Below, piece by piece: positions 9,893 through 62,668 of a stretch of 64,000 nucleotides of DNA. Position 1 is the first letter of the stretch. Every line of letters begins with the position of its first letter. A program made the translations under genes and the position numbers. The notes under the pieces were generated by a model. It had not been told where the DNA came from and ran no database searches. It was given only the letters and a program-made list of their open reading frames with translations. The stretch lies in sequence record NC_061446.1, one strand, 5' to 3'.

Positions 9893-9901
9893 TATTTACA
9901 G
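9893..9901 (-). promoter_or_regulatory. Class 1 motif CTGTAAATA
   Basis: Exact copy ~25 nt upstream of the 9867 start. Confidence 0.6.
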
Positions 9902-10246
9902 ATTTGGGCTGCGCTGCCACACAACGAATTTGACGTTCAGAGCACGACCATCACTCAAGGCAGCTTCGCGTGGATCATGGCGATAAAAGTGTTTCTCCAG
10001 CTGCTCAGGTCTTTCGTGATAGACGACTGACGCATGAGCGGGATTGGGCACGGATTCATAGGTGTGACTCTCAATCACTACCAGATTGTCGATGCGAAGA
10101 ACACCAGGAACCTCGAACACAGTCGGCAGCTTGCTTGGTGTAGTTGCGGTACCAAGAACTGTCTCATGATACTCAACTAATGCTCTAACTAACGCACGGC
10201 CAGCAGCAGTAGTGAGCGTCAGATTATACTCGGTTCTAAATTCCAT
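9896..10246 (-). CDS. Hypothetical protein
   Basis: 116-aa ORF with AGGAG RBS. Confidence 0.7.
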   Translation of the reverse strand: MEFRTEYNLTLTTAAGRALVRALVEYHETVLGTATTPSKLPTVFEVPGVLRIDNLVVIESHTYESVPNPAHASVVYHERPEQLEKHFYRHDPREAALSDGRALNVKFVVWQRSPNL

Positions 10247-10261
10247 GGTGTTCTCCTATTA

Positions 10262-10633
10262 TTACATCAGTGGCATTTCTGGATCGACGTAGGTGTACAA
10301 GAACACCACGTTCCAACCGGAGGCAGCTTCCGGGTTATTGTGGAAGCGATATCCGTAGAACATCAGGATGCCCGTACTACCTTCTGCCAGTGTTGGGTCG
10401 TAGATAGTGAACGCTTCTTCCAACTTGAGCGCGTCAGCAATGCTGATAGCCCAGTTATCCAAATCGAACGGACCTTCTGGAACTTCCCACGAATACGAAT
10501 GCTTCTGCCAGTGTTCGGCTTGCATGTCAGTATCTTTGGAAATCCAGTCGAGATGTTTAAGTCCCATGTGCAGAGCGACAGCGCGAGGAATGCCGTGCTC
10601 GTTCATGTAACGCTGCAATTGATCAAGACGCAT
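10262..10633 (-). CDS. Hypothetical protein
   Basis: 123-aa ORF with AAGGA RBS, overlapping the upstream gene end. Confidence 0.7.
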   Translation of the reverse strand: MRLDQLQRYMNEHGIPRAVALHMGLKHLDWISKDTDMQAEHWQKHSYSWEVPEGPFDLDNWAISIADALKLEEAFTIYDPTLAEGSTGILMFYGYRFHNNPEAASGWNVVFLYTYVDPEMPLM

Positions 10634-10946
10634 TGCATAGTTCCTTAATGGTGCGTGGGAAGACTGTCACGTTAATGCGCGTGTGATCTTTGTGTTCAGG
10701 ATGCGGTAGACATTCATGAGACACAAGCCAGACGTTCGTGCATTCGAGTTTATCACGCATCACCATTAACAGGTTGGACATGACAGACACGCTATGCACG
10801 AAGTTAGAATAATCGAGAGTGAGGATCATTACTTCACTCGTCGGTTCTTCATCGCCTTGGTTCCACAGGCTAACGTTCATCGACAGGCGGGCTGCTTCAC
10901 TTCTCAACATATCCATATCGAGAGTGTGCGGTAAACGCTCTTTCAT
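10623..10946 (-). CDS. Hypothetical protein
   Basis: 107-aa ORF with AAGGAG RBS. Confidence 0.7.
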   Translation of the reverse strand: MKERLPHTLDMDMLRSEAARLSMNVSLWNQGDEEPTSEVMILTLDYSNFVHSVSVMSNLLMVMRDKLECTNVWLVSHECLPHPEHKDHTRINVTVFPRTIKELCNAS

Positions 10947-10984
10947 TTAAACTCCTTATAGCTTCAAAAGAGACAGTCTATAAA

Positions 10985-11470
10985 TTAGAGAGCGAGGCCT
11001 TTCAGAAGAAGACGCGCACAGGTCAGGAATTGACGTTGTTTGTTTTGAGGCAGCTTACGATAGAGCTGGAGGATATCCTCTAACGAGGCATCTTCATCGG
11101 TACTCACATGAACGCTTTCAATCGTGCCGAGTTCTCCTTTCATCCAGTTGGCTTTGGTGACAGTTAACAGGAAAGTACCTCGATACTCTTCCATGATACG
11201 ACCACCAGGCCCGCCAACAGGGTTACGAACTTTGGTATGCTCGATGTTTGCGATGCGCTGAATCGCTATACCGTCAGGGAACTGCGCAAACACCTCAGAC
11301 AGATCAATATCTGCCTTGTTGTCTGGTGCAGGAGATTTAGCAACGAATGTCACACGGAACGTTTCGCCGCCTTCAACGTCGTATTGACCATCATAGATGA
11401 TATTGTCGTTGGCCCGCAGCGTGTCAGTAATCAATTTGAAAATCGGATCTGAGAACATGCTATTCCTCAA
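10985..11470 (-). CDS. Hypothetical protein
   Basis: 161-aa ORF in the operon; the true start may be ATG 11458 (GAGGA upstream). Confidence 0.7.
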   Translation of the reverse strand: MRNSMFSDPIFKLITDTLRANDNIIYDGQYDVEGGETFRVTFVAKSPAPDNKADIDLSEVFAQFPDGIAIQRIANIEHTKVRNPVGGPGGRIMEEYRGTFLLTVTKANWMKGELGTIESVHVSTDEDASLEDILQLYRKLPQNKQRQFLTCARLLLKGLAL

Positions 11471-11975
11471 TATAGTTGACGAGCATACCGATATGATTTG
11501 TAATCATTGTCTTTTGCTCTGAGGTCAGCTCGCTATATGCAGGGATGTTAGGGAACTGACCCTTCATTGCGAGATAGATTGTTTGAATGTTCGGAACTTC
11601 CTGCTCGACTCGACCGCGATGAATAATACAACCGCGATAGATGAATGCAGACGCAGGCAATGAGGGGTTTAGTTGAACAGGATCGACACAATCATAGGCA
11701 ACCAACACAATCGTATTGCCGAACACCTCTTTCAGCATTGATAGAGGCTCGTCTGGGTTCTCACTTTCCAGATCGTATGTCTCATACGTCGCGTCAACGG
11801 TACTTGTCGCAGCACCGCCAATGTTGATGTTCAGGCGTAGGTCCATCTTCGTGTGAACATCACGCATATCGGGATGTGGTGTGAGAATAAAGCCCTTCTC
11901 CTCAAGGGCTTTACGCAGCATTTGGGAAAATTCGATACGGCCCCGTTTATGCTGCGGTGTGTTTTGTAACTGCAT
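11460..11975 (-). CDS. Hypothetical protein
   Basis: 171-aa ORF coupled to the helicase stop (TAATG). Confidence 0.7.
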   Translation of the reverse strand: MQLQNTPQHKRGRIEFSQMLRKALEEKGFILTPHPDMRDVHTKMDLRLNINIGGAATSTVDATYETYDLESENPDEPLSMLKEVFGNTIVLVAYDCVDPVQLNPSLPASAFIYRGCIIHRGRVEQEVPNIQTIYLAMKGQFPNIPAYSELTSEQKTMITNHIGMLVNYIEE

Positions 11976-14124: not shown

Positions 14125-14570
14125 TAATCACCTTTGTCAGTTACGAGAATAGGACTCTCAGGAGTCTTGTGCGGCATAGCAAAGAAACTGCCATGCTCGT
14201 CTCGATAAATTAGCAGACCCCCAGAAGGACCTTCGATAGGACAGGTGAAGTTGTATAGTTTTTCGAGCGGAGGCATGTAGCCTACAGTCACTGCGTTAAA
14301 CGTACACCACTTCGCGGAGACTTCAAGCAGTGAGCCAACAACAGTGTCGGCTAGGCGCAGATACGATTGCTTGAAGTGGTAGCTATGTTCTATAGGCGCA
14401 ACGCTATCAATATCCAGCGAGTCACCGTACACAGCTTTATAGATCAGACAGAAACGACGACGCCCACGCGGGGCATTAGGTATTTCATACAGAACATCAT
14501 GTATGAGCGAACAAACGTCCCCAATGAGGACGTTTTTCTTAATAGCCAGTTTGGCCAGACGTGCCGTCAT
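14124..14570 (-). CDS. Hypothetical protein
   Basis: 148-aa ORF translationally coupled on both sides. Confidence 0.7.
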   Translation of the reverse strand: MTARLAKLAIKKNVLIGDVCSLIHDVLYEIPNAPRGRRRFCLIYKAVYGDSLDIDSVAPIEHSYHFKQSYLRLADTVVGSLLEVSAKWCTFNAVTVGYMPPLEKLYNFTCPIEGPSGGLLIYRDEHGSFFAMPHKTPESPILVTDKGD

Positions 14571-15745
14571 GCTGGCAGGTACCCAAAGTACAACAACGTG
14601 TGCGTGTCGAACTTATAGTTCAGACTGAATGCGTTCAGGCTATTGATGTTCGCACCGTGGAAGCCCATGTTGTGTCGTTCTTCACGCCCGATGTTACGCA
14701 GCAACTCACGGATGATACGCATGTCGAGCGAGGTACTAAACTCTTTCTCAACAGGCTTCGCCAGCTTCAAGCTGTCCTGTACGCTGCCGCTATCGTTACC
14801 AAACTTGAGTTTGAACTCCTGCTTCTTAACGAGGAGTTTCGCGTTCGTATTACCCTTCTTCTCAATCAGCGTTGAGATGTTAGCGAACGGAGCAGACAGG
14901 TCACCTTTAATCACACAACCAATCAGCGGCTTACCGAGTTGCGCAATCATGTTGTCCATGTAACGATAGTCTTCATCGCTTGCCTGAATCGGCGGCAGTG
15001 TCAGAACAAACGACTCCGCTTCGGCTGCGAATGAACTGCTGTCTACGTGGAACGTTACCTTCTCTTCACCGCAGAAGCGATAAATCAGATCGAACATTTC
15101 GCCAGTCAGACTGAAACGGAACGGCTTCACTTTCTTTTTCAGTGCAGCGCGATAGCGAGATGAAGTCCAGTGACCAGGACTGACGAGGCTCAGGCTCTCA
15201 CCGTCACAGATAACACGACACATCACGGTCTGGCCCGTGATTGTATCTTTCAACCGAGTCAGCTTAACGCCCTGAGTCATCGCGTCGATAACTTCACGCG
15301 TCATCTCATGGCCACCTTCGATATGGTGATGCAGACCCTGTTCGACCATTGGAATCTGCTCGGCCGATACCGGACGCAGTTTCACTTCTGCTTTGTACTT
15401 GCCTTTCTGTTCGCTGATGTTCAACGTCTTACCGTCGAACTCAACATTTAGCTCTTTACGCTTGCTGATCAGACCGGTCAACTGAATCGGGTCGATGTTC
15501 ATTACCGTGTCAGCGTCGGCGGTCGCGCCAGGAACGAGATAAGCAACGAAGGTATCAGGAGTACGGCCCAGAACGAACACGTCGGACTTATACGTCACCA
15601 GCAGGTGGATGTGAGTCAGCTTGTCGTCCGACTCAGAGAAACGCGTTACGCTATCAACACGTTTAAGAATATCTGACAGGAACGTACCGTTCAGCGTTAG
15701 GCTGCATTTCTTAGCGGGGTTCTTCGGCAATCGACAAGTCTTCAT
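14567..15745 (-). CDS. Putative sliding clamp (DNA polymerase III beta-like)
   Basis: 392 aa (three-domain beta-clamp size), alternating helix/strand pattern, N-terminus LSDILKRVDSV...IHLL, located two genes from the polymerase. Confidence 0.55.
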   Translation of the reverse strand: MKTCRLPKNPAKKCSLTLNGTFLSDILKRVDSVTRFSESDDKLTHIHLLVTYKSDVFVLGRTPDTFVAYLVPGATADADTVMNIDPIQLTGLISKRKELNVEFDGKTLNISEQKGKYKAEVKLRPVSAEQIPMVEQGLHHHIEGGHEMTREVIDAMTQGVKLTRLKDTITGQTVMCRVICDGESLSLVSPGHWTSSRYRAALKKKVKPFRFSLTGEMFDLIYRFCGEEKVTFHVDSSSFAAEAESFVLTLPPIQASDEDYRYMDNMIAQLGKPLIGCVIKGDLSAPFANISTLIEKKGNTNAKLLVKKQEFKLKFGNDSGSVQDSLKLAKPVEKEFSTSLDMRIIRELLRNIGREERHNMGFHGANINSLNAFSLNYKFDTHTLLYFGYLPA

Positions 15746-16004
15746 CTCTATCCTCTAAAACAAATTGTAGTGTGCCCTGTATATTTACAGCATTGAGGCG
15801 CTTGCCGGATGCTGCAATCAGTCCATTCAGAACGCCAACGAAGTCAGCGCTGTAACAGTCAGGTGCTATCTGGTGGACATAAATATCATCAGGCACGTCA
15901 CCTGGGTTAAGCTGCCAAGCAGTACGCAAGGCAGCACCCATGAATGCCGGACGTTCTACCAGATGCTTGTTCAGGAACGAACATATATCTTCGGCCGTCA
16001 TCAT
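15711..16004 (-). CDS. Hypothetical protein
   Basis: 97-aa ORF overlapping the polymerase stop by 4 nt. Confidence 0.6.
   Translation of the reverse strand: MMTAEDICSFLNKHLVERPAFMGAALRTAWQLNPGDVPDDIYVHQIAPDCYSADFVGVLNGLIAASGKRLNAVNIQGTLQFVLEDRDEDLSIAEEPR
15782..15790 (-). promoter_or_regulatory. Class 1 motif CTGTAAATA
   Basis: Exact copy upstream of the clamp gene. Confidence 0.65.
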
Positions 16005-19000
16005 TTCTTCGCAATCCCCTTAAGAGCAGATTTGAGCATGGACTTACTGAGTTTGATTTTCTTCTTAGGCGCAGCGCCCTCTGTAGAGGCAGCGGCTTTC
16101 TTCGCAGCTTCTTCCGCTTTGTACTTCTCGAACGTTTTAATGTTCTTCGGAAGTTCTGCCAGCCACTCCTTGATGTTCTTCTTGTCCTTGTTGGTGAGAG
16201 GATTAACTTTGTCCATGCTACGAATTTTAATATCGTTAGCCCAAAGCTGTTTCTTCATCCAATCGGACATGAGATGATACTGGTCTTCCATAATGCTGTC
16301 CAGTGTCTTCTCAACATCGAGGTCTTTCTCACCCAGCTCGTCACGCTTAATCTCAAGGCCGTCTTTAATGAGCTTCCTGAGTTGAACGTAAGAGAAGTTC
16401 CAACCCTGCACGTCTTTCTCTGACGCACCGATTTCAAAGTCAATCTCAGGTACGGACGTGAACTCAAACCCTTCGTGACGCTTCTGCACAACTTCGACCA
16501 CTGCGCTGGTCATCGCACGTTCGATCATATCGAGCGCAAGGAAGATCCATTTGTAATCGCAGTCAACGGTCAAGGAGTCGTGTACCGATACGTTCATGTC
16601 AAAGTCTGGGTACTCGCCATTCGCTTTCCAATACTCATATTTCATACGATCCAGAATACGAATCGCGGACATCATCAAGTCAGAACCGAAGCCCTGTACC
16701 GGACTGTTTACCGCACGACGGTCACACGCTGCATGAACCATGTTCGCTTCACGATGCGACTCTGGAAGCATCAGGCCCCAGAGGTGACGACGACGACCAA
16801 CTGGTGATTCAACAAAGAAGTTCTCATGTGCAAACTTCTGAATCTTATCGAACCACTTCAAGCCCACAGGGAATCGTTTAAGGAACTTGCTTTTGATTTC
16901 TTCAATCTCACCGACTTCACGTCCAGTTGATTTCGCAAGACCTTTGTTACCCTGCTGATAGATCAGGCCGAAGATTACTGTCTTAACCGCGTTACGTACG
17001 GACTTGGTTACGTCCATTACGTTTGGAATACCGAAGAAGTAAGCGGCGTTGATTTTGTGAACGTCACCCTCAGCTTCGACGCGGTGCTCAATCCACGGAT
17101 CAGGCACAGTACGGAAACGATGACGCAGCTTACGGCCTTGCTCGAATACGTCTGCAACGCCCTGGTCACCTGAGATGATTGACCAACCACGAACTTCGTG
17201 CGCTGAGTAGTCGACCTTGATAAGCAGGCGATTCTTACGCGCAATCAGAATACGTTTGATCAACTTACCCATCTCACTACGAGACGGTACCTGTTGCAAG
17301 TTCGGGTCAGATGCTGAGGTACGACCCGTTACAACTCCAAGATAACCATACGTCGGTCGAATTGAACGGTCATGTTTGAAGTCTTCTGATTCACCCCAGA
17401 GCTTGAGCAGGCTGTTAACGTAGGCGTTCTTGAGCTTGTACGCTTTGCCGAGTTTGGTATACAACGCAACCAAAGGCACATCCTTATACGCCTCCTGGAA
17501 GTCCTTGTCGAGCTTGCCCGCCTTCTTGCCGTTCTCACGTAACTGTTCCCCTTCTTTCAGAGGCTTGAGCTTCATCACATCGAAGAACAGAATCTGTTTG
17601 TGTTCCGACTTCGACATATCGAACTTGGTCACTTCGACTTTGCCCATAAGACCCATCTTAGGAACATTGTCGTCTTTGCAAATAACCTTGTTCGCAGCCT
17701 TAACCTCAGGGCTGTTCATGAACTCACGCTCTACGTTTCGAATTTCTTCGTTGATAGGGCTGTTCGGCAGGTTGAGCTTAAACAGGTAATCAATGTCTGC
17801 GCCTGCGCCTGTCGTTTCAAGAATCGAGAACGCATGAATCTGGTCGGAGATTTGCTCACTAACCATCGACTCATACTTCTTGTATTTAATATCGTTGGCT
17901 CGCTTTTGCTGTTGCTCTGCGATACGGAACGGAACGATAACGTCGAGGCCGGCATACTCCTGCACCGATTCGTCGAGGTCAACGTCTGCGATTGTCGCTC
18001 GCATCTCTTTACCGAACGACACTTCGTGGTACACCTGACAACCAAACTGCATCGTCAGGTTAGCCAAGTTATAATAACCGCTACCGGTAACGTTCAACAA
18101 CGACTTGGCGTTTTCATCGAACGCAAACTCACCCGCTTGAATATCCCAAACGTTTGCTGCATAACTACGGATGCCGAAGTTAGAGCGCATTACGTTCAGG
18201 TCGAACTTCGCGTTGGTATAGATCTGATATTTGTTCTCGTTGTCCTCGAAGTAATCTTTGAACAACTCACTTACCTTGCGTAGTTCTTTCGGACTGAATG
18301 GACTATCGCGGTGATAGATAGGGACAACATACGCTTTCTGACCGTCGGAAGATAACTGCACCGTCAAGATTTTATTCTTGATACGATTCAGGTTCTCTGT
18401 TTCGGTATCGACTGCAACCTTCTTGGCGCGCTTCATACGCTTCAAGATTTTCTCAAGTTGCTTGACCTTCGTTACATACACGAGGTCCCAGTTACGCTTC
18501 TTACCACACGTAACTTCATCGATCTTATAGCGCATACCCTTGTTAAGCCACGGCAACATCCAGCGAGCCATGTAACCTAACGTGTACGATGAACCTTTGA
18601 TGTGCATCGGGTTCAACACGGTGTGATAGCTGACGTTCGGCACATGGATAAAGCTGTGCTTCTTACCGTCATGCTTGAGCTTCGTTGGAATCTCAACACC
18701 GTACCAGTGCTCGTAATGATCTTTCGAGAACTGTATCTTCTCGCTGTTCAGTGCTTTGAACGGCGCTTTACCGAAGGTCAGAACATAGTCTGGCTTGTAC
18801 TCAACAATCAAATCACGAATACGATCCGCAAACGCTTGGTCTGCGTCTTCTTTGAACTGCTCGCCCTTGTCATACGTCTTGAACATGTTGTACGAGACAA
18901 CAAGGAAGTTCCAGTCGTCAAGAGTTGTCTTGGTCGGAAACGTATCTTCGAGATACTGCATCTGATTCAGGAACAACTCACCTTCCGTGCTACTGAATAT

Positions 19001-19171
19001 CTTGCCGCTACGCAAGTCTTCGGTAGGCATGTGATCGAGGACGAGAAGTGCTTTACCACCTTTGGCACTTTTACTTATGCCTTTTAGTATTCGAACACCG
19101 TCATACGTCTGCTGGTCAGCAAACTGTTCAGGTGGATCGAAGTCAAGAGCTACGTGCTTGATTTTCACCAT
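16001..19171 (-). CDS. polA: Family A DNA polymerase: UDG-like N-terminal domain, 3'-5' exonuclease, polymerase
   Basis: Exo I VAVDTETE, Exo II NAKFD, TGRTSASDPNLQQVP, motif A DYSAHE, motif B KTVIFGLIY, motif C VHDS. Confidence 0.95.
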   Translation of the reverse strand: MVKIKHVALDFDPPEQFADQQTYDGVRILKGISKSAKGGKALLVLDHMPTEDLRSGKIFSSTEGELFLNQMQYLEDTFPTKTTLDDWNFLVVSYNMFKTYDKGEQFKEDADQAFADRIRDLIVEYKPDYVLTFGKAPFKALNSEKIQFSKDHYEHWYGVEIPTKLKHDGKKHSFIHVPNVSYHTVLNPMHIKGSSYTLGYMARWMLPWLNKGMRYKIDEVTCGKKRNWDLVYVTKVKQLEKILKRMKRAKKVAVDTETENLNRIKNKILTVQLSSDGQKAYVVPIYHRDSPFSPKELRKVSELFKDYFEDNENKYQIYTNAKFDLNVMRSNFGIRSYAANVWDIQAGEFAFDENAKSLLNVTGSGYYNLANLTMQFGCQVYHEVSFGKEMRATIADVDLDESVQEYAGLDVIVPFRIAEQQQKRANDIKYKKYESMVSEQISDQIHAFSILETTGAGADIDYLFKLNLPNSPINEEIRNVEREFMNSPEVKAANKVICKDDNVPKMGLMGKVEVTKFDMSKSEHKQILFFDVMKLKPLKEGEQLRENGKKAGKLDKDFQEAYKDVPLVALYTKLGKAYKLKNAYVNSLLKLWGESEDFKHDRSIRPTYGYLGVVTGRTSASDPNLQQVPSRSEMGKLIKRILIARKNRLLIKVDYSAHEVRGWSIISGDQGVADVFEQGRKLRHRFRTVPDPWIEHRVEAEGDVHKINAAYFFGIPNVMDVTKSVRNAVKTVIFGLIYQQGNKGLAKSTGREVGEIEEIKSKFLKRFPVGLKWFDKIQKFAHENFFVESPVGRRRHLWGLMLPESHREANMVHAACDRRAVNSPVQGFGSDLMMSAIRILDRMKYEYWKANGEYPDFDMNVSVHDSLTVDCDYKWIFLALDMIERAMTSAVVEVVQKRHEGFEFTSVPEIDFEIGASEKDVQGWNFSYVQLRKLIKDGLEIKRDELGEKDLDVEKTLDSIMEDQYHLMSDWMKKQLWANDIKIRSMDKVNPLTNKDKKNIKEWLAELPKNIKTFEKYKAEEAAKKAAASTEGAAPKKKIKLSKSMLKSALKGIAKK

Positions 19172-19210
19172 CTAGTCCTATCAGAGTGTGTAACACAAAT
19201 CGATGGCTGT

Positions 19211-19219
19211 TATTTACAG
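19211..19219 (-). promoter_or_regulatory. Class 1 motif CTGTAAATA
   Basis: Exact copy between a terminator and polA. Confidence 0.7.
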
Positions 19220-19231
19220 ATTCCAGAAACG

Positions 19232-19258
19232 AAAAAGGGCACCCGAAGGCACCCTTTT
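19232..19258 (-). terminator. Intrinsic terminator
   Basis: GGGTGCC-TTCG-GGTGCCC plus TTTTT. Confidence 0.8.
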
Positions 19259-19267
19259 GATTAAATA

Positions 19268-20410
19268 TTACAGCGTAGATACGATAGCACGGAACACCTG
19301 ATATGCGCTCTGATAATCAGAGAAGGTACCCAGCTGCTCAAATGCAGACTTAGGCAGATCGCTAGGCGCACCAGCAGACGAATCGTACTTGGCGACAGTG
19401 AACTTGCCACGACCGCGAGCCTGTTTGATAGAGCCAGTCATTGACGCAGTCGGTCCGAACACAACACCAGTCTTGCTGCCGGTACCCATCACAAGGATGC
19501 AATCTTCATCGCCACCCATGTTAGCAACGGTAGCAGTCACGCTACGTTTCGGCGCAGGCAGTTGCATGGCTTTGAACATAGCCCTTACGTTCTCACCATC
19601 ACCACCCTTCATCAGCGCATCATACAGAAAGTCATAGCCGTTCGCGCTCGATGTGTTGCTTGTGCTAGGCATGCGAAGTTCAGCGGCAGTGCGCTCACCT
19701 TTCTTAGCAGCCGTAGCAATCTCGGCGTCAGTTGCGTCTTTGGTGGCCAGCAGTTTGATGACGTTCTTGATTGAACGCAGTTCGCCCAGATGAATCTGAA
19801 CCTTCTTGACCTTTTTGAGATGGTCACCAACGAAGGTCATCAGCCAGCCTTTCTGCTGCATGACAACAGCCACTTCCAGTTTCTTATACTGGAAAGAGAA
19901 CTGCTTGCCGGAAGCGTATAAGAACTTACCTGCTCCAGCTACAGGCTCAACAGCGCGAATGAAGTCGGGCGCATAGTCACGCGCATCGCTTCGGATCAGA
20001 CTGGAGTACGCAGGAGAAAACGTACCTACAGTAGTTACCGGGGCCTGTGGCTTCCCAGCACGAGGCTTAGCAACGACTTTGTTAGGGTCAGTTGCTTTGA
20101 TCTTGATTGCACGAAGACCGTTAATGGTAGCCACCAGCGTCCTGGCTTTATACAGGTTCTTCATGGCGGTGACAAGATTCTTGCCAGCAGCTTTCTTCGC
20201 AAGGGCGGTAGTCGCCGCTGCGTCGTTCAGCAGGTCAAGGACAGCGGACAGCTTCGCAGTGTCCAGCTCTTTGATTTTAACCAGCTCGTCAATCTTCTTA
20301 ACGATAAGTTTTGCGTTCTTACCGAAAAGGATTTCAGCGTTGGCGATCTGCGTTTTGTTCGCAGCAGAGACCGACACAACAGTGCCGGACGGGAGAGTGA
20401 TTTCGTGCAT
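19268..20410 (-). CDS. Lys/Ala-rich hypothetical protein with N-terminal VSVSA
   Basis: 380-aa ORF with AAGGA RBS and a downstream terminator. Confidence 0.75.
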   Translation of the reverse strand: MHEITLPSGTVVSVSAANKTQIANAEILFGKNAKLIVKKIDELVKIKELDTAKLSAVLDLLNDAAATTALAKKAAGKNLVTAMKNLYKARTLVATINGLRAIKIKATDPNKVVAKPRAGKPQAPVTTVGTFSPAYSSLIRSDARDYAPDFIRAVEPVAGAGKFLYASGKQFSFQYKKLEVAVVMQQKGWLMTFVGDHLKKVKKVQIHLGELRSIKNVIKLLATKDATDAEIATAAKKGERTAAELRMPSTSNTSSANGYDFLYDALMKGGDGENVRAMFKAMQLPAPKRSVTATVANMGGDEDCILVMGTGSKTGVVFGPTASMTGSIKQARGRGKFTVAKYDSSAGAPSDLPKSAFEQLGTFSDYQSAYQVFRAIVSTL

Positions 20411-20419: not shown

Positions 20420-20986
20420 TTAACGTTTCTTGTTGGTCCAGTTGTTCTGCTTAACAGGCGCAGGTGAGGTGTTCTCTTCCGTGATTTCGTCGTCGGCGTC
20501 TTCTTCCTCGTCCTCGACGTCATCTACTTCCGGCTCAGGTTCAGGCTGCGGTTCAGCCTGTTTGACAGGAGTAGTCTCCATCACAGACGCAGCGAGGGGT
20601 GCCTGAGACTCAGTATTTACAGTAGCAACTGGCTCTGCTTCTGCGGCCTGACGCGCTTTAGCTACTTCACCAACAGCGTGTTCGTGAATAACGTCAGTGG
20701 TAAGCAGCGCGCCCTTATCTTTCAGGATTGCATCTGCTTTCTCTTGGTCCCATTGGTCCCACAGGATATCAAGAGTCTTGTAACCGTAGTTCATGCCTTT
20801 CGGCAGCTTGCCACGACCGTTGAACGGCAGACCGTTAGAAGGAGTAGCTGGCTCGAACTCGTCCATCATCTCCCACTTACGTTTAGCCTCGATACACTTC
20901 GGGCCCCAGACGCCATCGCAGGCACCGTCGTACAGACCAAGCATGGTCATGATGATCTGTAGCTTCTGATAGAATTTGTTCAGCAT
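20420..20986 (-). CDS. Peptidoglycan-binding (PGBD-like) protein with acidic tail
   Basis: LQIIMTMLGLYDGACDGVWGPKCIEA matches the PG_binding_1 pattern; Asp/Glu-rich C-terminus. Confidence 0.7.
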   Translation of the reverse strand: MLNKFYQKLQIIMTMLGLYDGACDGVWGPKCIEAKRKWEMMDEFEPATPSNGLPFNGRGKLPKGMNYGYKTLDILWDQWDQEKADAILKDKGALLTTDVIHEHAVGEVAKARQAAEAEPVATVNTESQAPLAASVMETTPVKQAEPQPEPEPEVDDVEDEEEDADDEITEENTSPAPVKQNNWTNKKR

Positions 20987-27380: not shown

Positions 27381-28163
27381 CTAAATAAAAATGCTCTTGA
27401 CCAAAGTGTTGAGCCTCTTCTCCACAGCATGACGTTTGTACGTGGACAGGAAGCAGGTCAGCCTGCGCGATTGCAGATGCAGCGCAATAGCGTTACCCTT
27501 AACCCGCGCACAGTCAACCCCCAAATCAATACTCCACGGATGCCAAGCACGAGGTGCAAGCATCACTTGTTGAATTGTTGGGTAAGTGTCTGGCACAACA
27601 GGCAGAGGAGACTTTGCCAGTTTCTTCGTCAAATTATCAGTTTTGAACAAGGCTTTAGGCTGTTTGTTCGAAAACCAGTAAGGAACCTGCTTGTGCAGTA
27701 TCTCACCTACTTTCGGAATACCACCACGAGTTGTCTGCGGCACATACACCAGATAAATATCGATCGTGGTGTTGATGCAGTTAGCAACACGATTGTAGTC
27801 GCTGTTGGTTCGACTATGCACCTCAGCCAGCCTGAACTTATTGCTGAACTCAATACGTTGCAGCCATCTTTTCAGGTCAGCCTGTTGAATCTTGAGGAGT
27901 GCTTTTGCCTGCTCAAGAGAGTGCTTGGTAATCGGTGGGATAGGACGTAACAGGTACGTTGTGCTGCTACGAGCCAGAGAAGAAATAAACCCTTCTACAA
28001 CGCGCTGCATACCGAGAGGTTGTGGCAGCGAATGAAAGAGGTCAACCGCTGTTTGAGTTGAGATGTACGCACCCCAAGCCTCGATGTACTCAGGGCTAAC
28101 GCAGTCAGGAAAGTTGCGTAAGTCCAATCCCACGTCTGAGCCATATTTCTGCAAACGACTCAC
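27381..28163 (-). CDS. Hypothetical protein
   Basis: GTG start with GGAGG RBS, overlapping the HNH gene stop. Confidence 0.7.
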   Translation of the reverse strand: MSRLQKYGSDVGLDLRNFPDCVSPEYIEAWGAYISTQTAVDLFHSLPQPLGMQRVVEGFISSLARSSTTYLLRPIPPITKHSLEQAKALLKIQQADLKRWLQRIEFSNKFRLAEVHSRTNSDYNRVANCINTTIDIYLVYVPQTTRGGIPKVGEILHKQVPYWFSNKQPKALFKTDNLTKKLAKSPLPVVPDTYPTIQQVMLAPRAWHPWSIDLGVDCARVKGNAIALHLQSRRLTCFLSTYKRHAVEKRLNTLVKSIFI

Positions 28164-28547: not shown

Positions 28548-28556
28548 TATTTACAG
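28548..28556 (-). promoter_or_regulatory. Class 1 motif CTGTAAATA
   Basis: Exact copy upstream of the HNH gene. Confidence 0.65.
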
Positions 28557-35920: not shown

Positions 35921-35929
35921 TATTTACAG
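35921..35929 (-). promoter_or_regulatory. Class 1 motif CTGTAAATA
   Basis: Exact copy upstream of sbcD. Confidence 0.65.
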
Positions 35930-36460: not shown

Positions 36461-36469
36461 TATTTACAG
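36461..36469 (-). promoter_or_regulatory. Class 1 motif CTGTAAATA
   Basis: Exact copy 6 nt upstream of the SLOG gene ATG. Confidence 0.6.
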
Positions 36470-45784: not shown

Positions 45785-45987
45785 TAGATATACTCGAATG
45801 CTTCTTCCTGAATAAGACCTTTACCGTGAATCTGCTCGAACACTTCGATCTCGTCATCGGTATACGGCTCGGCTGCTTCTGCAATCACATCGTAACTGAC
45901 AGATTCGTCTTTGCGGCCTTCACCGTAGTAATGAACAGGCTTGACGATGCGCCAGACAGGGACTTGTATTAGTTCGCGCTCTAACAT
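45784..45987 (-). CDS. Small hypothetical protein
   Basis: 67 aa, TAATG-coupled on both sides. Confidence 0.65.
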   Translation of the reverse strand: MLERELIQVPVWRIVKPVHYYGEGRKDESVSYDVIAEAAEPYTDDEIEVFEQIHGKGLIQEEAFEYI

Positions 45988-46196
45988 TAGTGGAATACCG
46001 CAGTTGGTTCAACCCACAATTCAGCAGCATTATACTTTTTACGCAGCTCGTTCAGTACGGTATCAGACACAGGGCTGGTGGACGAGAAGATACACTGAGG
46101 CACTTTCTCTTCCTGACCTGTTACCGGATTAATATCGTGGTCGTGACGCATTACGTTCCAGCGTTTGTTTACGCGGATATTGATAGTGTGTTCCAT
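45987..46196 (-). CDS. Small hypothetical protein
   Basis: 69 aa; first gene after a CTGTAAATA motif. Confidence 0.65.
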   Translation of the reverse strand: MEHTINIRVNKRWNVMRHDHDINPVTGQEEKVPQCIFSSTSPVSDTVLNELRKKYNAAELWVEPTAVFH

Positions 46197-46232: not shown

Positions 46233-46241
46233 TATTTACAG
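46233..46241 (-). promoter_or_regulatory. Class 1 motif CTGTAAATA
   Basis: Exact copy heading the sbcC operon. Confidence 0.7.
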
Positions 46242-47520: not shown

Positions 47521-48810
47521 TCACTTCTTCTTTTTCTTTTTCTTTTTCTTCTTAGGCTCGTCGTCTTCTTCATCGTCGTTGCCTAAATCAACAGTCAACT
47601 TACCGCTGTAGATGTTCGCCATCACTTCGGTAATTCCAGTCTCCAGCATAATATCTGCCGGCACCGAAGTTGAGTTGAATGCCACTTCTGCATCAGCCAG
47701 AGCTTTCTGCAAATACACCAAACTGACCAGATTGACTTTGATGTTGTCTTTCTTGATCATGTTCATGAACATCTTGAGACCCGCAGACTGCCACTTATTC
47801 GTTTCGGCGTAATGCCCCAACACACCGTGAATAATCCAACGAGCTTTCGCTACGATTGCACGAGGGTTGTTTGCTTCACGCAGGAACTGAATAACACCGA
47901 TCAGGTCCATAGACAGATAAGCACCAATCATCTGAACTGCTTTCGCTTCCATGTCGATTTCTGGATCAGCAGCAGCCAGTTCAGCAACGAGGTTCTTATC
48001 AAAGTCTTCACCACCACGAACAGAGGCGTAGATGTTTTGCAGCATGGTGATTGCACCACGCATCTGTCCACCAGCGTACTCTGCTACCTGATGAAGTGCC
48101 GCTTCTGCTTTATCACGCGCCTTGTCTTTCTTCGGCAGGATATCAAGCTGACCACTGATCTCAATCAGGCGTTTATGAATCACGTCAGTTGCAATCGGTC
48201 TGATCGGCAGTTGCGTCATACGACTGATCATCGTGCCTTTCATCTTCTCAGGGTTCGTTGTTACGAAGATGAAGACTACGTGCGCTGGAGGCTGTTCGGT
48301 AATCTTGAGCAGCTTGGATTCAGCAGCACTGGACATGAGGTGCGATTCGTCGAAGATGAACACACGACGTTTGAACATCGGGCTTAACGGGGCCGAGTCA
48401 ACAATCTTCTGTGAGCCTTCAACTTTACCTGCATCGCCGCCCATATCGAACTCTTGTTCGTCAGGATGTGCGCCACGGTCGTGCATCTCACACGAACGAC
48501 ACTTACCGCAGGCAGAGAACGAATCGCAGTTGATATACTTCGCCACCAGACGTGCGAACGTTGTCTTGCCTGAACCAAGATGACCTGTGATAATCATTGT
48601 TGACGGAATCGTTTTCGACTTCTGCCAACCCTTCATGATCTTCACGATGTGATCTTGACCCACGTAATCTTCGATACGCTTCGGTCGGAACTGATCTGCA
48701 AAGTTAACCGTGGTCAACTCAACAGACTCGGAAGAACCGCTTTTCTTTTTCGATGGCTTATCGTCACCGAACGAACGCGACTTCTTCTTTTTCTTTTCTT
48801 CTTTCGCCAT
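47521..48810 (-). CDS. dnaX: Clamp-loader AAA+ subunit (DnaX gamma/tau-like)
   Basis: RPKRIEDYVGQDH, GHLGSGKTT, Zn module CDSFSACGKCRSC, IFDESH, LLKITEQPP...FIFVTT. Confidence 0.88.
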   Translation of the reverse strand: MAKEEKKKKKSRSFGDDKPSKKKSGSSESVELTTVNFADQFRPKRIEDYVGQDHIVKIMKGWQKSKTIPSTMIITGHLGSGKTTFARLVAKYINCDSFSACGKCRSCEMHDRGAHPDEQEFDMGGDAGKVEGSQKIVDSAPLSPMFKRRVFIFDESHLMSSAAESKLLKITEQPPAHVVFIFVTTNPEKMKGTMISRMTQLPIRPIATDVIHKRLIEISGQLDILPKKDKARDKAEAALHQVAEYAGGQMRGAITMLQNIYASVRGGEDFDKNLVAELAAADPEIDMEAKAVQMIGAYLSMDLIGVIQFLREANNPRAIVAKARWIIHGVLGHYAETNKWQSAGLKMFMNMIKKDNIKVNLVSLVYLQKALADAEVAFNSTSVPADIMLETGITEVMANIYSGKLTVDLGNDDEEDDEPKKKKKKKKKK

Positions 48811-48846: not shown

Positions 48847-48855
48847 AATTTACAG
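48847..48855 (-). promoter_or_regulatory. Class 1 variant CTGTAAATT
   Basis: Upstream of the clamp loader gene. Confidence 0.55.
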
Positions 48856-48949: not shown

Positions 48950-49147
48950 TTAGGCAAAGCACATTTCCCAGCGTGGTACAACGCGGAAGAACTGCTTAAA
49001 GTTGGACGGCGGATTCTTCTTGATTGATTCAAGTTTCTGTTCCACTACGTCATAATCTTTTATGCCACTCTCTACGGTGTGAGTGGTGAATGTACCGTCA
49101 GCCTGAATCAAGTCGGCGACAACACGGTAGCTTGGTTTACGAAGCAT
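48950..49147 (-). CDS. Small hypothetical protein
   Basis: 65 aa, AGGAG RBS, CTGTAAACA upstream. Confidence 0.65.
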   Translation of the reverse strand: MLRKPSYRVVADLIQADGTFTTHTVESGIKDYDVVEQKLESIKKNPPSNFKQFFRVVPRWEMCFA

Positions 49148-49187: not shown

Positions 49188-49196
49188 TGTTTACAG
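49188..49196 (-). promoter_or_regulatory. Class 1 variant CTGTAAACA
   Basis: Upstream of the 49147 start. Confidence 0.5.
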
Positions 49197-52835: not shown

Positions 52836-53303
52836 TCAATCGGGTTTTTCAAGTTGCCTGTGAATGAAGTACATCATATCGTCATCTTCATCCTCCGGCT
52901 CGTAAAGATCTAGCTTTGGAAAATTCCAAGCGACCTCTACTTCATATCGCCTAAGTGCGAACATTATCGCTGCATCAATTTCTTGATAAACGCATTCGAA
53001 AGGCTTTAAGTAAGGATAGGACAGGCATAAAGTTTTTATTGGCTCAGGCGGGCAAGTCTTCAACCACGGAACTATCTCAGCAAGAGATTTCTCCAGCAGT
53101 TCTTTACTTCCGTACTTAGGCCAGTCCTCAAGAAGAAGTTTGGTTATGTACTTCTTTCGATTCTTAGCGAGTGCCGCATATTCCCGAGTAAGAAATTTCT
53201 CAACGCCTTTCTCTGGAACAGTTTGTTTCTTTGCGGCTAGAACGATTTCAAGTTTGACCGCTATGCGCAATCGAGCCAACTGACTGCATTTAACTTTCGG
53301 CAT
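52836..53303 (-). CDS. Hypothetical protein coupled to the Pol-like gene
   Basis: 155 aa, TAATG overlap with 53303-54952. Confidence 0.65.
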   Translation of the reverse strand: MPKVKCSQLARLRIAVKLEIVLAAKKQTVPEKGVEKFLTREYAALAKNRKKYITKLLLEDWPKYGSKELLEKSLAEIVPWLKTCPPEPIKTLCLSYPYLKPFECVYQEIDAAIMFALRRYEVEVAWNFPKLDLYEPEDEDDDMMYFIHRQLEKPD

Positions 53304-54952
53304 TAATCATCACCCATAAAATCAAGGGTATCAGAGAATTTCTTAATGATGAACTTCGCCTTAGCCGACTGGACGTCACCCTTAGATTTCATTAGGGCGC
53401 CATCGTGTTCAAGCGAGTAAACGATTTCAACATTACCACTTAGAATCGCCTCAAACAAATGATTCGATTCAATGCCAGATATGCAATGACTCATGGTTCG
53501 TCGTCGCACCTTACGAGACGAGATACATTGGTCATGTTCGAGAACATACTTGGCTCCAGTATCGCACGTCAGCAACATTCCTTCGGACGTATAGCGGAAT
53601 CGCTTGGAATAAATATCACATAGTCTCTGTAGCGCTTCGATGAAATGCTTGCAGTCTATGTTCCACGACTCCACAAAGTCGTAGACCTCACTCAGATTTT
53701 TAAAGTGAGGTCTAAGCGCCATCACAGCACTCGCCCTAGGGCTTTTCGCCAACCTGTCCGCACTGAACAGCGTTCCATAAAAACAAATTTTCACCAGCTT
53801 CTTCGATAGGCGAGTGTTGTTTGGGTTAGCTTGTTGGAGTTTATCTACAATGTCATTTACAGAATGTACATCGTCAAGGAAGCTGCACTCGATGCCGTTG
53901 TCTGCAAACTCCTTACGGATGATGTTGAGCTGACTGCTCTCCATATCCCAGTTATCGCCAACAACACTACATGCCTGTTTAAGAACGGCAGGGAATGATT
54001 GGAACCCACCACCCTGTTCGAACAGACGCCCACCGACTCGCGCAATTGTATACGCTGGGTAGTATCTGATTATCAGAGGTTCCTCGGACACGATCTGAAT
54101 CGGTCCCGAAAGAATCGCCTGTAGACAACTCATTACCTGATGATATTGTTTTAAGGCCTTTCGTGTCCCTCTGAAACTCTTAACAGTCAGATAATCGAGA
54201 ATGGGGTCGATAGCAATTTCGTTTGGCCCTATCTTCTTCAACACCGCATTATAGAGCTTACGCGCAGCACGATCCCGATTAGAGTTCAGTCCGTATTTTG
54301 CGTTGCCTCCGGACAGGTCATGCTTTCGAGGCTTGAAAGGTTTGTTAGCACTCGCGCTGATCATATCCATAATCGTTTGACCGAATCGTTCTTGAACCGC
54401 CTTCAATGGACTATAGAGTCTCGTTAGCTCAAGAATTTCACGACTGGACTTAGGGCGATTCGGGTACATCGCGTCTAAGTGCTTTCGCTTGATGCGGAAC
54501 TCTCGACAACGACCAGGCGATCCCGGCGTTTTCTTTTTATACTTCTTGTAGTCCATTACATTAGCGATAAGCCACTCAAGGGCTCGGCTGAAATGTTTTT
54601 CAGTTCGTTCCCATTTTGGACCTACTGGACCACGTAACTTATTTTCGCACCCGAATACCATCGGAAGCTCTTTGACTCCAAGTTTTCTGCTGAACGGCAC
54701 CCACACGGTACCAAACTTTTCAAACTTCTTTCTTTTTGTCGGATAAAGCGAGGATTGAAGCACATGCCAGAAAAATAGATTGATCTGACGGCGAAACTCG
54801 GCTTCATGCTTCGCTGGACCGTCATACGGGCATTTCTCAACAACATTATCCCTCACCCACACCAGAGGTTCTAGCTCTTGGTGAGTGGGATTTCGCGTCA
54901 AGACCGCTTTGCCCTTTTTCATAAAAGAAGACATTCGAATCTCCTGAATCAC
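53303..54952 (-). CDS. Divergent family A / TV-Pol-like polymerase-fold protein
   Basis: GGRL..FQSFP, NWDMESSQ, VKICFYGTLF, ISGIES and LEHDG occur in PolA motif order; no exonuclease motifs seen. Confidence 0.6.
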   Translation of the reverse strand: MIQEIRMSSFMKKGKAVLTRNPTHQELEPLVWVRDNVVEKCPYDGPAKHEAEFRRQINLFFWHVLQSSLYPTKRKKFEKFGTVWVPFSRKLGVKELPMVFGCENKLRGPVGPKWERTEKHFSRALEWLIANVMDYKKYKKKTPGSPGRCREFRIKRKHLDAMYPNRPKSSREILELTRLYSPLKAVQERFGQTIMDMISASANKPFKPRKHDLSGGNAKYGLNSNRDRAARKLYNAVLKKIGPNEIAIDPILDYLTVKSFRGTRKALKQYHQVMSCLQAILSGPIQIVSEEPLIIRYYPAYTIARVGGRLFEQGGGFQSFPAVLKQACSVVGDNWDMESSQLNIIRKEFADNGIECSFLDDVHSVNDIVDKLQQANPNNTRLSKKLVKICFYGTLFSADRLAKSPRASAVMALRPHFKNLSEVYDFVESWNIDCKHFIEALQRLCDIYSKRFRYTSEGMLLTCDTGAKYVLEHDQCISSRKVRRRTMSHCISGIESNHLFEAILSGNVEIVYSLEHDGALMKSKGDVQSAKAKFIIKKFSDTLDFMGDD

Positions 54953-54976: not shown

Positions 54977-54985
54977 TGTTTACAG
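54977..54985 (-). promoter_or_regulatory. Class 1 variant CTGTAAACA
   Basis: Upstream of the Pol-like gene. Confidence 0.5.
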
Positions 54986-58128: not shown

Positions 58129-58137
58129 CTGTAAATA
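58129..58137 (+). promoter_or_regulatory. Class 1 motif CTGTAAATA
   Basis: Exact copy on the plus strand upstream of plus-strand gene 58174, so orientation follows gene direction. Confidence 0.7.
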
Positions 58138-58173: not shown

Positions 58174-58866
58174 ATGGCGAAGTTGAAGAAAGAACAAAAG
58201 GCAGTTGTGGCTAAAAAACCTGCGAAGGTCAAGAAGTCCAAAGCCGTCAAAACAAATAAAGGAAAAGCAGTAGCTATTCATGTTGTTCAGGACACGCGTC
58301 CGATTGTGCATTGCCCTGAAATGGAAGAAAAGCCTCAACCGTTTCGTTTTCGTGGCCAGTGCCCGATCACAACATGTCAGTATTGCACCCGCGAAACGCC
58401 TAACGGCTGCATGGCGCTTGACCGCAAAGAAGCTGCCGACCGTTCAATCTCTAACAGGGAGATCGCTTATTACAAACGTGGCCTCTTCCCAGAACTCAAA
58501 GAGATGGATCAAAAGCAATTGGACAATACGATTCGACGCGCACAAAATCGTACCCGTACTGCTATCTGTCTTACTATGTTTATTGCCGGGATTGATGATT
58601 CTGATTGCGATAGGTCTTTTGAGTACATAGAAGGCCGCAGTCGCATTGTCGATCAGGTCCATAACTATCTGGTGCAGACGTTCAATGATTACCGTCCGTG
58701 GATGCTGGCGTATCTCGATGACGAAGAACGTTTCTCTCAGATGGTAGGCAAGATAACCAATTCTGACTTTAATTTAGGTATGGCACTGCGGTTAACGCCT
58801 CGTAAGTATCAGACGTTCTGCCAGTCGCTGCAAAACCTTAAACAATCTGGAGACTCAAATGAGTGA
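58174..58866 (+). CDS. Putative Zn-binding, HTH-containing regulator
   Basis: Lys-rich N-terminus, CPITTCQYC...GC, then SISNREIA...TIRRA. Confidence 0.45.
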   Translation: MAKLKKEQKAVVAKKPAKVKKSKAVKTNKGKAVAIHVVQDTRPIVHCPEMEEKPQPFRFRGQCPITTCQYCTRETPNGCMALDRKEAADRSISNREIAYYKRGLFPELKEMDQKQLDNTIRRAQNRTRTAICLTMFIAGIDDSDCDRSFEYIEGRSRIVDQVHNYLVQTFNDYRPWMLAYLDDEERFSQMVGKITNSDFNLGMALRLTPRKYQTFCQSLQNLKQSGDSNE

Positions 58867-60653: not shown

Positions 60654-60680
60654 AATAGAAATGAAATTCGGAGATTTACA

Positions 60681-61334: not shown

Positions 61335-61349
61335 TCCAAAGCTACAAAC

Positions 61350-61388
61350 AAAAAAAATGGGAGGCCCCGAAAGGAGTCTCCCATTTTT
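61350..61388. terminator. Bidirectional terminator between convergent genes
   Basis: A-run, ATGGGAG...CTCCCAT stem, T-run. Confidence 0.8.
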
Positions 61389-61389
61389 A

Positions 61390-61560
61390 TTACTGCTGCT
61401 GTTCTCTCATGCGATCAAGAAACGCTTTACCTGCGCCCGGCACAAGCACTCGCGGCTCGAAAGGAATCTTATTGATTCTGCCCTGCATGTTACGGCGAAA
61501 GCGTTCACGTAGTGCCTGAACGGTGTGTTGCTTAAACTGCTTTCTGAATTTCAAAGCCAT
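61390..61560 (-). CDS. Small basic 56-aa protein (not in the ORF track)
   Basis: MALKFRKQFKQHTVQALRERFRRNMQGRINKIPFEPRVLVPGAGKAFLDRMREQQQ; AAGGA RBS, starting one nt after the primase stop. Confidence 0.6.
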   Translation of the reverse strand: MALKFRKQFKQHTVQALRERFRRNMQGRINKIPFEPRVLVPGAGKAFLDRMREQQQ

Positions 61561-61561
61561 T

Positions 61562-62620
61562 CTACTTTCCTTTCTTCTCTATTGCCTTTGGTCTATTCCA
61601 CCCAAGTTCTTTCGCTGGCATGATGCACTTCTTACCGTGAATATCACGCAGCGTCATACGAACTTCTTTGATCAACTTGAATGGTGCGTTGTCGGGGTCG
61701 AGCTTAATCAGCTTACCGTCTTCATCAAACTCACGAGGTAGTTTAAAGTGCTTGACCGGTACTGGTGAGTTACGTTCAAATTCATCTTTGATCTTTGTGC
61801 GCAACAACTTCCCACCACCATCGTTATCTGTCATCGTATAGACAACACTCACGCCAAGCATTTCAATCGTTCTGCGTTTCGTTTCACCAAACTGCTCTGC
61901 ACCGAGAACAGCCAGCGCTGGTATTCCGTATGACAGGAGAGCCAGAGCATCTCGCGGCCCTTCGACAAGAACGATGTATCGCAACTTGTACTTCTTCAAA
62001 CACTCTTTCACAAGCGGCAGAGGGAACAGGCCTTTGTCTTTTGCCCAATCGCCTTGCGAGTTCACATAGCTGGTGCCGTTCATTTGCTTACGCAGATAAG
62101 CTGCAATCCCACCTATGTATTTCGTTCCATGCTTACACGGAAAGAAACAAACGTTTGTGCCTGTGTGCTGTGCATTAAGCAAACCACCAGCAGCACGAAC
62201 AAGCGCACCCGGATAGCCACGCCACTCAACATCGAGCGGCCACTCCATGTATGACTTACGTCCGAGTGCTTTCATCAACAGACCGACAGACGGATAAGTA
62301 CCAATCTTCGAGCCAATCTGATCATACGTTTTAAGCAATGCACTGAGCGAGTTCGTTCCTGCGTCTTTTAACGCCCAGCCTTTGATCTCTTGCAGTCGAG
62401 CATGAGCCGCTAATTTGTTCCAGCCGCCCTTCTCGCCGCAGCCGAAGCAGTGAAAGAATCCGAGTGGTATCTCCATGCCTACAGAAGTGTAAATACCACA
62501 ACTAGGAGTCTTATCACTGTGGAACGGACAGCACACCATAACAGTGTCGCCGTTATATTTCTTCTCGCCCGGCAGTTTACCTATTTCGTCAAGAATTATC
62601 TGATGAACGTCTTCTGCCAT
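61562..62620 (-). CDS. dnaG: DnaG-type DNA primase
   Basis: CHC2 finger CCPFHSDKTPSC...CFGCG; TOPRIM LVEGPRDAL and TDNDGGG. Confidence 0.9.
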   Translation of the reverse strand: MAEDVHQIILDEIGKLPGEKKYNGDTVMVCCPFHSDKTPSCGIYTSVGMEIPLGFFHCFGCGEKGGWNKLAAHARLQEIKGWALKDAGTNSLSALLKTYDQIGSKIGTYPSVGLLMKALGRKSYMEWPLDVEWRGYPGALVRAAGGLLNAQHTGTNVCFFPCKHGTKYIGGIAAYLRKQMNGTSYVNSQGDWAKDKGLFPLPLVKECLKKYKLRYIVLVEGPRDALALLSYGIPALAVLGAEQFGETKRRTIEMLGVSVVYTMTDNDGGGKLLRTKIKDEFERNSPVPVKHFKLPREFDEDGKLIKLDPDNAPFKLIKEVRMTLRDIHGKKCIMPAKELGWNRPKAIEKKGK

Positions 62621-62659
62621 ACCATCCTCTGTCTATTTCGTAATTTACGCATATAAGCA

Positions 62660-62668
62660 TATTTACAG
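62660..62668 (-). promoter_or_regulatory. Class 1 motif CTGTAAATA
   Basis: Exact copy upstream of the primase gene. Confidence 0.7.

Follow-up and report, generated by a model that had tools for sequence, protein, structure and literature searches.

A conserved, putative -35-less promoter motif upstream of replication and recombination genes in Erwinia phage pEa_SNUABM_30

Does a short word that recurs upstream of replication and recombination genes in Erwinia phage pEa_SNUABM_30 mark a promoter class private to the phage, and, if so, which protein would read it? The word is CTGTAAATA (the class-1 motif), and the stretch of DNA in which it was noticed, referred to here as the window, comprises 64,000 nucleotides (nt) and corresponds to positions 124001–188000 of the record NC_061446.1 (259,771 bp, Alexandravirus). 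The whole annotated record was used, so that the motif could be judged genome-wide; coordinates without a prefix are those of the window and those marked ‘record’ are those of the full NC_061446.1. No RNA polymerase subunit genes are annotated in this record, and to our knowledge almost no promoter–sigma pair has been defined for jumbo phages that lack an RNA polymerase of their own. With a probability of roughly 0.8, we read the full element, AAT-CTGTAAA-TA, as a phage-specific, one-piece promoter of the -10 type, which would serve replication and recombination genes and be recognised through a phage sigma-like subunit.

The window contains ten exact copies of CTGTAAATA against 0.54 expected, and none of 100 shuffles reached ten (the largest held four). 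An earlier note on this DNA, made from the letters alone, had listed nine copies with a chance expectation of about 0.5; all nine are present with the positions and strands it gave, our expectation agrees with its own, and a tenth copy, at 20614 on the minus strand, had been missed. The three one-mismatch words it listed are also real and all lie on the minus strand (CTGTAAATT at 48847 and CTGTAAACA at 49188 and 54977). As a class, one-mismatch words are barely enriched in the window (18 vs 11 expected), so these three count only through their position and flanks. Across the whole genome 27 exact copies are found where about two are expected, and all 27 are in the sense orientation: the 14 plus-strand copies lie in plus-strand gene blocks and the 13 minus-strand copies in minus-strand blocks. 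A start codon follows within 110 nt in twenty cases; of the remaining seven copies, five are intragenic and two, at record 84053 and 255159, fall in long gaps without genes. Of all upstream 8-mers in the genome, TCTGTAAA is the most enriched, being found before 21 genes (0.9 expected). Nor is the motif equally frequent in antisense positions: non-coding DNA holds 22 sense copies of TCTGTAAA and a single antisense one.

A sequence logo was built from 39 upstream sites which share CTGTAAA, and it defines the full element given above. Only 12 positions and an A at +15 carry information, the -35 region is without conservation, and each position past the +15 A carries less than 0.25 bit. The G at the second position of the core (consensus TGTAAATA) is invariant. 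The downstream A, seven bases after the last A of the motif, is conserved in 25 of the 39 sites, is often preceded by G/T and C/T, and is the likely transcription start site. If this A is taken as +1, the core is numbered T(-14) G(-13) T(-12) A(-11) A A T A(-7), and A occupies -7 in 32/39 sites. The proposal that the motif is a -10-only element is thus borne out in so far as it behaves as an oriented element with no -35. Several copies are preceded, 5–15 nt upstream, by a G+C-rich hairpin and a T-run (for example before PolA, the SbcC operon and the clamp loader), which by sequence is the classic layout of a terminator followed by a promoter. The distance from motif to start codon is short and variable, from 6 to about 100 nt genome-wide, which argues both against an activator box at -30 and against a translational operator.

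The motif is shared with many related phages. Gene calls in the related genomes are automatic, with some genes missed and some starts misplaced, and the upstream k-mer and orthologue counts are therefore approximate. The exact word CTGTAAATA, compared with the same word reversed as a control (in parentheses), occurs 26 (1) times in phB78, 31 (1) in Y3, 29 (5) in Yoloswag, 16 (2) in JA11, 33 (2) in Lu11, 18 (1) in PhiXhv-12, 6 (2) in NCTB, 4 (1) in Aura, 0 (0) in PaBG and 4 (3) in T4. In a blind ranking of upstream k-mers, the TGTAAA(T)/GTAAATA family comes first in most of the related genomes analysed whole, by one tally in seven of eight; the exceptions are JA11 and BCSR5, where it stands just behind one other word, and PaBG, where it is marginal (GAAACTGT). 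The family appears as GGTAAATA in Aura and as AGTAAATA in BCSR5, and the flanks of the consensus are A/T-rich in all genomes. TGTAAATA precedes 23 genes in GR11A (0.3 expected), and BCSR5 holds 38 copies of GTAAATA (3.2 expected). Orthologues were then paired as reciprocal best hits, and retention of the motif was compared between orthologues of motif-bearing and of motif-less genes: it is kept in 22/28 vs 7/213 in Y3, 10/22 vs 7/173 in Yoloswag, 10/22 vs 7/141 in JA11, 7/13 vs 8/76 in NCTB and 3/8 vs 2/72 in PaBG. The motif stands before the SSB gene in seven genera; both there and before PolA it is retained amid flanking sequence that has diverged completely. By these sequence comparisons, phages of Erwinia, Dickeya, Pseudomonas, Xanthomonas and Vibrio retain the motif together with a large part of the genes it precedes, and a Burkholderia phage has a variant of it. 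Most phages have T immediately before GTAAATA, the Burkholderia phage BCSR5 has A (23/38) and the Pseudomonas phage Aura has G (13/22), a difference that might be used to look for covariation with the reader protein.

The motif has been recorded before. The GenBank record of phage Lu11 (NC_017972) carries 16-nt features named ‘putative middle/late promoter’, with the sequences CTGTAAATACATAGTA, CTGTAAATACAGTGTA and CTGTAAATGGTGAGTA, and the motif was thus already predicted in 2012. The study of that genome is reportedly the one by Adriaenssens and colleagues in the Journal of Virology in 2012 (86:6369). As in pEa_SNUABM_30, the Lu11 promoters are bioinformatic predictions. The two phages share an identical core, CTGTAAAT(A/G), an A-rich 5′ flank, GTA about 5 nt downstream, orientation with the genes, positions before SSB and before the operon holding the sigma gene, and homologues of the sigma-like proteins gp235 (36% identity) and gp329, which are described below. 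They differ in the flank, which is AAAA in Lu11 and AAT in pEa_SNUABM_30, and in their target genes, which overlap little (0/7), possibly through crude gene calls. Core, A-richness of the 5′ flank, orientation and the sigma-like genes of the clade match, and on sequence grounds we assign the motif of pEa_SNUABM_30 to the CTGTAAAT class of the Lu11/PaBG/Alexandra-like jumbo phages; the class is known from the Lu11 prediction, and its conservation, judged from the genomes compared, spans a much wider phage clade than recorded. Full-text literature searches for phage and promoter with CTGTAAATA or CTGTAAA returned chance matches only, and the Dickeya jumbo-phage paper says nothing of promoters or sigma.

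The individual sites in the window agree with the earlier claim that each copy lies shortly upstream of a gene and is co-oriented with it: gaps from motif to start are 6–42 nt (two sites have two values, given below, one of which is 81 nt to an annotated start), and every listed site points the same way as its gene. All sites described here carry the class-1 core on the minus strand unless stated otherwise. The core at 9893..9901 (aatCTGTAAATA) lies 25 nt before the GTG of gp159 (9247–9867; phrog_20094, ‘DNA polymerase’), and Y3 and NCTB have an orthologous site. At 15782..15790 it lies 36 nt before gp168 (14567–15745), a sliding-clamp-like processivity factor (phrog_947), and within the 3′ end of the upstream gene; this site is kept in Y3, JA11 and NCTB. 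The copy at 19211..19219 follows a hairpin and T-run terminator and precedes the PolA start by 39 nt (16001–19171; PF00476 and PF01612 matches). The layout of terminator, motif, about 35 nt and ATG before PolA is found in SNUABM_30, Y3, Yoloswag, PaBG and PhiXhv-12 with unrelated flanking sequence. The core at 28548..28556, kept in Y3 and Yoloswag, lies 22 nt before the HNH endonuclease gene gp176 (28160–28525). That at 35921..35929, kept in Y3, JA11 and PaBG, lies 29 nt before gp183 (34818–35891), an SbcD-like phosphoesterase whose PF12850 match (E 1.2e-05) is just short of Pfam's own cutoff; the record of a relative annotates the SbcD-like protein as a recombination endonuclease.

At 36461..36469 the core stands only 6 nt before the ATG of gp184 (35945–36454; SLOG/DprA-like), and the predicted +1 A is the A of this ATG, which implies that the gp184 mRNA is a candidate leaderless one. 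The copy at 46233..46241, downstream of a terminator (46289–46266), heads the operon gp199–gp198–SbcC (43454–46196; SbcC matches phrog_77) and is 36 nt from the ATG of the open reading frame (ORF) and 81 nt from the annotated start. The variant core aatCTGTAAATT at 48847..48855 follows a T-run and lies 36 nt before the clamp-loader gene gp202 (47521–48810; PF13177 match), and the variant aaaCTGTAAACA at 49188..49196 lies 40 nt before the small ORF gp203 (48950–49147). The third variant, CTGTAAACA at 54977..54985, precedes the putative polymerase-like gp211 (53303–54934/54952) by 24 or 42 nt, according to which start is taken, and the orthologues of gp211 in Y3, Yoloswag and JA11 also have the motif in front. 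On the plus strand, the core at 58129..58137 (taatCTGTAAATA) lies 36 nt before gp216 (58174–58866, function not assigned), which heads the operon gp216–gp218; the site is kept in Yoloswag, JA11 and NCTB. The last core, at 62660..62668, lies 39 nt before the DnaG-type primase gene gp220 (61562–62620; PF01807 and Toprim matches) and is kept in Y3, Yoloswag and PhiXhv-12. Among the genes which the earlier note had named as targets, PolA, the clamp, its loader, the primase, SbcC and the SbcD-like protein are supported by family matches; its ‘Pol-like’ label for 53303–54934 is not, the sole match there being a PHROG without known function.

In a relative of about 90–95% identity, which comes from metagenome runs (X17/X18), the PolA gene is longer by 1247 bases at 17303–17319, possibly through an intron, an intein or a homing-endonuclease insertion. 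In the same relative, 596 bases upstream of PolA (19224–19821) are swapped for 176 others; homology breaks 5 nt upstream of the PolA motif, which suggests that the promoter travels with its gene as a single module. Of the 31-mers of 15000–20000, 55–83% are present in metagenome runs from soil, silage and food, and close relatives appear to be widespread in plant-associated samples.

Outside the window the class-1 motif precedes the NAD-ligase, SSB, NTP (nucleoside triphosphate) pyrophosphohydrolase and gp235 genes and is found in the gap before the gp329 operon. It is almost never in front of virion and lysis genes. A second word, (C)GCTAATTT, also without a -35, is found 22–45 nt before structural and lysis genes (PAAR protein, connector region, endolysin); its copies in the window, all on the minus strand, are at 30273, 33885, 41137, 42037 and 57130 (record 154273, 157885, 165137, 166037 and 181130). 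Orthologous sites in Y3, Yoloswag, JA11, NCTB, Lu11 and PaBG retain the TAATTT core of this box, and the box is probably a late promoter class, as judged from its targets. The claim that CTGTAAATA marks replication and recombination genes thus holds: such genes carry it, and virion genes carry GCTAATTT instead. A third class comprises about ten host-type extended -10 elements (TGnTATAAT-like) before small genes at record 205700–256000 (for example record 210577, 227209, 236219, 238394 and 251092), often with a conserved AATAACTGGWCAAAAT box (CTGGWCAAAAT) about 25–35 nt upstream; it is likely to be an early class. Canonical -35/-10 sigma70 promoters are not enriched in the genome (11 vs 20 expected), and the idea that class 1 is a degenerate set of host promoters was rejected on this ground. 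The distribution of the three classes suggests a three-stage programme, with host sigma70 acting early, then CTGTAAATA for replication (middle) and then GCTAATTT for the virion (late), the timing being read from gene content alone.

The mechanism which we propose is as follows. The host core RNA polymerase, equipped with a phage-encoded sigma-like subunit, would bind AAT-CTGTAAA-TA, and transcripts would begin with the conserved A that lies seven bases further downstream; with this start, T would fall at -12, A at -11 and a further A at -7. Located just past terminators or over the final codons of the preceding gene, such promoters would yield mRNAs with short leaders. The set driven in this way would comprise PolA, the clamp, the clamp loader, primase, ligase, SSB, SbcCD and two polymerase-like genes, and the gp235 gene and the gp329 operon, which encode the two sigma-like proteins, also have class 1 in front of them. 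Virion and lysis genes would use (C)GCTAATTT and the block of small genes the host-type extended -10, leaving CTGTAAATA as the putative middle class. Jumbo phages without an RNA polymerase are described, in general terms only, as encoding sigma factors that probably direct the host RNA polymerase to phage promoters (PMC7824862, PMC13282480).

The earlier note had advised a search of the rest of the genome for sigma-like genes; two proteins that could take this role are encoded there, both outside the window. The first is gp235 (345 aa; record 193631–194668, 5.6 kb past the window end), the only annotated ‘RNA polymerase sigma factor’ in the record, which matches phrog_17569 (E 5.5e-156). Its residues 4–234 superpose on sigma70 regions 1.2–2 (Z 15.7; root-mean-square deviation (rmsd) 3.3 Å over 223 residues), and they are followed by a disordered linker and a small helical C-terminal domain. 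A sequence search of gp235 against the PDB found nothing, the domain being identified by fold comparison alone. The alignment consensus contains Y-I-K-W-W-I, which we take to resemble the melting motif of region 2.3. Family matching of the neighbours of the gene (gp234, gp238–gp244) gave nothing informative. Proteins like gp235 are found in Alexandra-like phages, Y3, Yoloswag, Dickeya JA11/29/33, NCTB, Lu11 and PaBG, as well as in Xanthomonas PhiXhv-12, the Pseudomonas vB_PpuM group, Vibrio GR7B/GR11A, and Burkholderia and Achromobacter jumbo phages, usually in the gene order sigma–SSB–RecA/UvsX. The second protein is gp329 (379 aa; phrog_19229, E 3.8e-161), which has a 140-residue N-terminal extension; residues 142–379 superpose on extracytoplasmic function (ECF) sigmas (sigmaH, sigmaL, sigmaE and AlgU) with Z 8–10, values which are modest for helical proteins although the best-scoring rows consist almost entirely of sigma factors. 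For the sigma2 part by itself the rmsd is 2.3–3.1 Å. The gp329 protein is the orthologue of PaBG gp112, which the authors of the PaBG study suspected to be sigma-like (PMC7412058).

The proposal that a phage sigma-like factor reads the motif therefore stands as far as candidates are concerned, while the evidence on which of the two it would be conflicts. Presence and absence of the families could not decide the matter, as both phrog_17569 and phrog_19229 occur in nearly all clade members (including Lu11, PaBG, NCTB, PhiXhv-12 and Aura). Several observations speak for gp235. The GTAAATA core is enriched in most sigma-bearing genomes analysed in full (PaBG and NCTB carry only TGTAAA), T(-12) and A(-11) of the predicted numbering fit a sigma70-type domain 2, and BCSR5 keeps a variant of the motif with no gp329-family match found there; the last is a single weak data point because the gp329 family evolves fast. 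Other observations speak for gp329. In front of its operon stands a host-type extended -10 promoter in addition to the class-1 motif, so that gp329 could be made first, and the gp235 gene has class 1 only, with no early-type promoter found in the 7 kb upstream. The late core TAATTT (T-12, A-11, T-7) would fit a sigma70-like reader better than TAAATA does. The -10 contains TGTA, and TGTAAA resembles the GT-containing -10 words of ECF sigmas; the conserved AAC-type -35 that ECF promoters combine with a short -10 is absent from the logo. Taken together, gp329 has close to an even chance of being the reader, gp235 is a tentative candidate somewhat below even odds, and a reader other than these two is unlikely.

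A more specific scheme may be drawn, which as a whole we regard as doubtful, though possible. The GTAAATA box would be a long-kept promoter of the entire clade (AGTAAATA in Burkholderia), read without a -35 by gp329; gp329 would be made first from the extended -10, then amplify itself and switch on gp235, which would read the late GCTAATTT. If true, this would amount to a two-sigma, three-stage cascade on the host RNA polymerase with two private promoter classes lacking a -35. Phages SPO1 (gp28 followed by gp33/34) and phiEco32 (gp36) encode sigmas that redirect the host core RNA polymerase in temporal classes. pEa_SNUABM_30 resembles them in having two sigma-like genes and two private promoter classes; it differs in the promoter words and sigma families and in that neither private class has a -35. 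The element also resembles the extended -10 of sigma70 (TGnTATAAT), with a TG beside a hexamer starting with TA and no need of a -35; here, however, the TG abuts TAAATA without the one-base spacer, and A rather than T is found at -7.

Four points weigh against the promoter as we interpret it. Five of the 27 exact genomic copies are intragenic; the copy on the minus strand at 20614..20622, in the coding sequence 20420–20986, lacks the AAT prefix and is probably a chance or non-functional one. None of seven Lu11 orthologues of motif-bearing genes keeps the motif; gene calls for this genome are crude, and despite the 0/7 the motif can be seen by eye in front of the Lu11 SSB gene. The public runs labelled RNA in which the stretch is found consist of single contigs of 47–61 kb from a relative about 90–95% identical, and these are DNA-like and without 5′ ends. 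Finally, the features of the element suit neither type of reader in full. ECF sigmas normally need a -35 box, which is absent here, and a sigma70-type domain 2 normally wants T at -7, where the motif has A.

Among other explanations, the one that survives best, while still improbable, is that a phage activator binds the motif and redirects the host sigma70 holoenzyme, in the way that a MotA box works at T4 middle promoters. The targets belong to the same functional gene class as those of T4 middle promoters, and no sigma has been tied to the motif by experiment. The MotA-type geometry, a box near -30 with a sigma70 -10 at fixed spacing, is nevertheless not seen: past the +15 A there is no conserved -10-like or other downstream element, start codons come as near as 6–25 nt, and the motif ends 6–29 nt before several start codons, too near to accommodate a -30 box, a -10, a start site and a ribosome site.

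The earlier note had likened the motif to the late promoter of phage T4. That promoter, TATAAATA, is an 8-bp A/T-rich element of the -10 only, without a -35, from which transcription starts about 6–7 nt downstream, and it depends on gp55, gp33 and gp45. The corresponding explanation, that a gp55-like minimal sigma acts with a gp33-like co-activator and the clamp but has been redeployed to replication genes, we consider very unlikely. In its favour, the motif is likewise A/T-rich and confined to the -10, with a predicted start at a similar distance, TGTAAATA is one position off TATAAATA, and a clamp and a clamp loader are encoded. Nevertheless, the G at position 2 is invariant and an upstream AATC is conserved, the genes driven would be replication genes and not the virion genes, which carry GCTAATTT, and TATAAATA itself occurs only four times in the genome. 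A six-frame search of the whole record gave no match at E≤10 to gp55 (phrog_234 and phrog_12791) or gp33 (PF16805), although very remote homologues may escape such a search. The analogy is therefore reduced to a mere resemblance.

An equally slight chance is given to a signal acting at the RNA level, such as a processing site or a translational operator in 5′ leaders, with which the strict sense orientation and the nearness to start codons would also be compatible. Against it, the spacing to the start codon and the Shine–Dalgarno sequence ranges from 6 to over 100 nt, several copies come right after strong terminators, where upstream transcripts end, and a conserved A at the constant distance of +7 is what an initiation site would show. 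An artefact of composition or codon usage, or a chance repeat, to which the five copies in coding sequence and the strand bias of the shorter word CTGTAAA in coding DNA too might point, is effectively refuted by the shuffles, the upstream k-mer ranking and the orthologue test, with enrichment in non-coding upstream DNA, conserved flanks and orthologous sites kept in genomes of 42–56% G+C.

On the reading as a phage promoter, the motif would represent a sharply defined and widely conserved promoter class with a replisome and recombination gene set and two candidate readers, although the principle is not new. Biocontrol phages of Erwinia and Dickeya would be better annotated with its help, for example as regards operon boundaries, gaps in the annotation and a gene that is likely to be leaderless, and short promoter parts dependent on a phage factor may result.

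Two gene-free stretches with a class-1 motif deserve mention. The first is a gap of 359 nt (record 255153–255513), which contains the motif, a perfect extended -10 (TGATATAAT) and then TATACTATAAT, and precedes the operon with the ECF-like gp329; a similar layout is found in Yoloswag, and the gap could also encode a small RNA. The second, 1.3 kb without an annotated gene (record 82727–84065), has a class-1 motif at 84053 which points into the stretch; a gene missing from the annotation, a pseudogene or an RNA may be located there.

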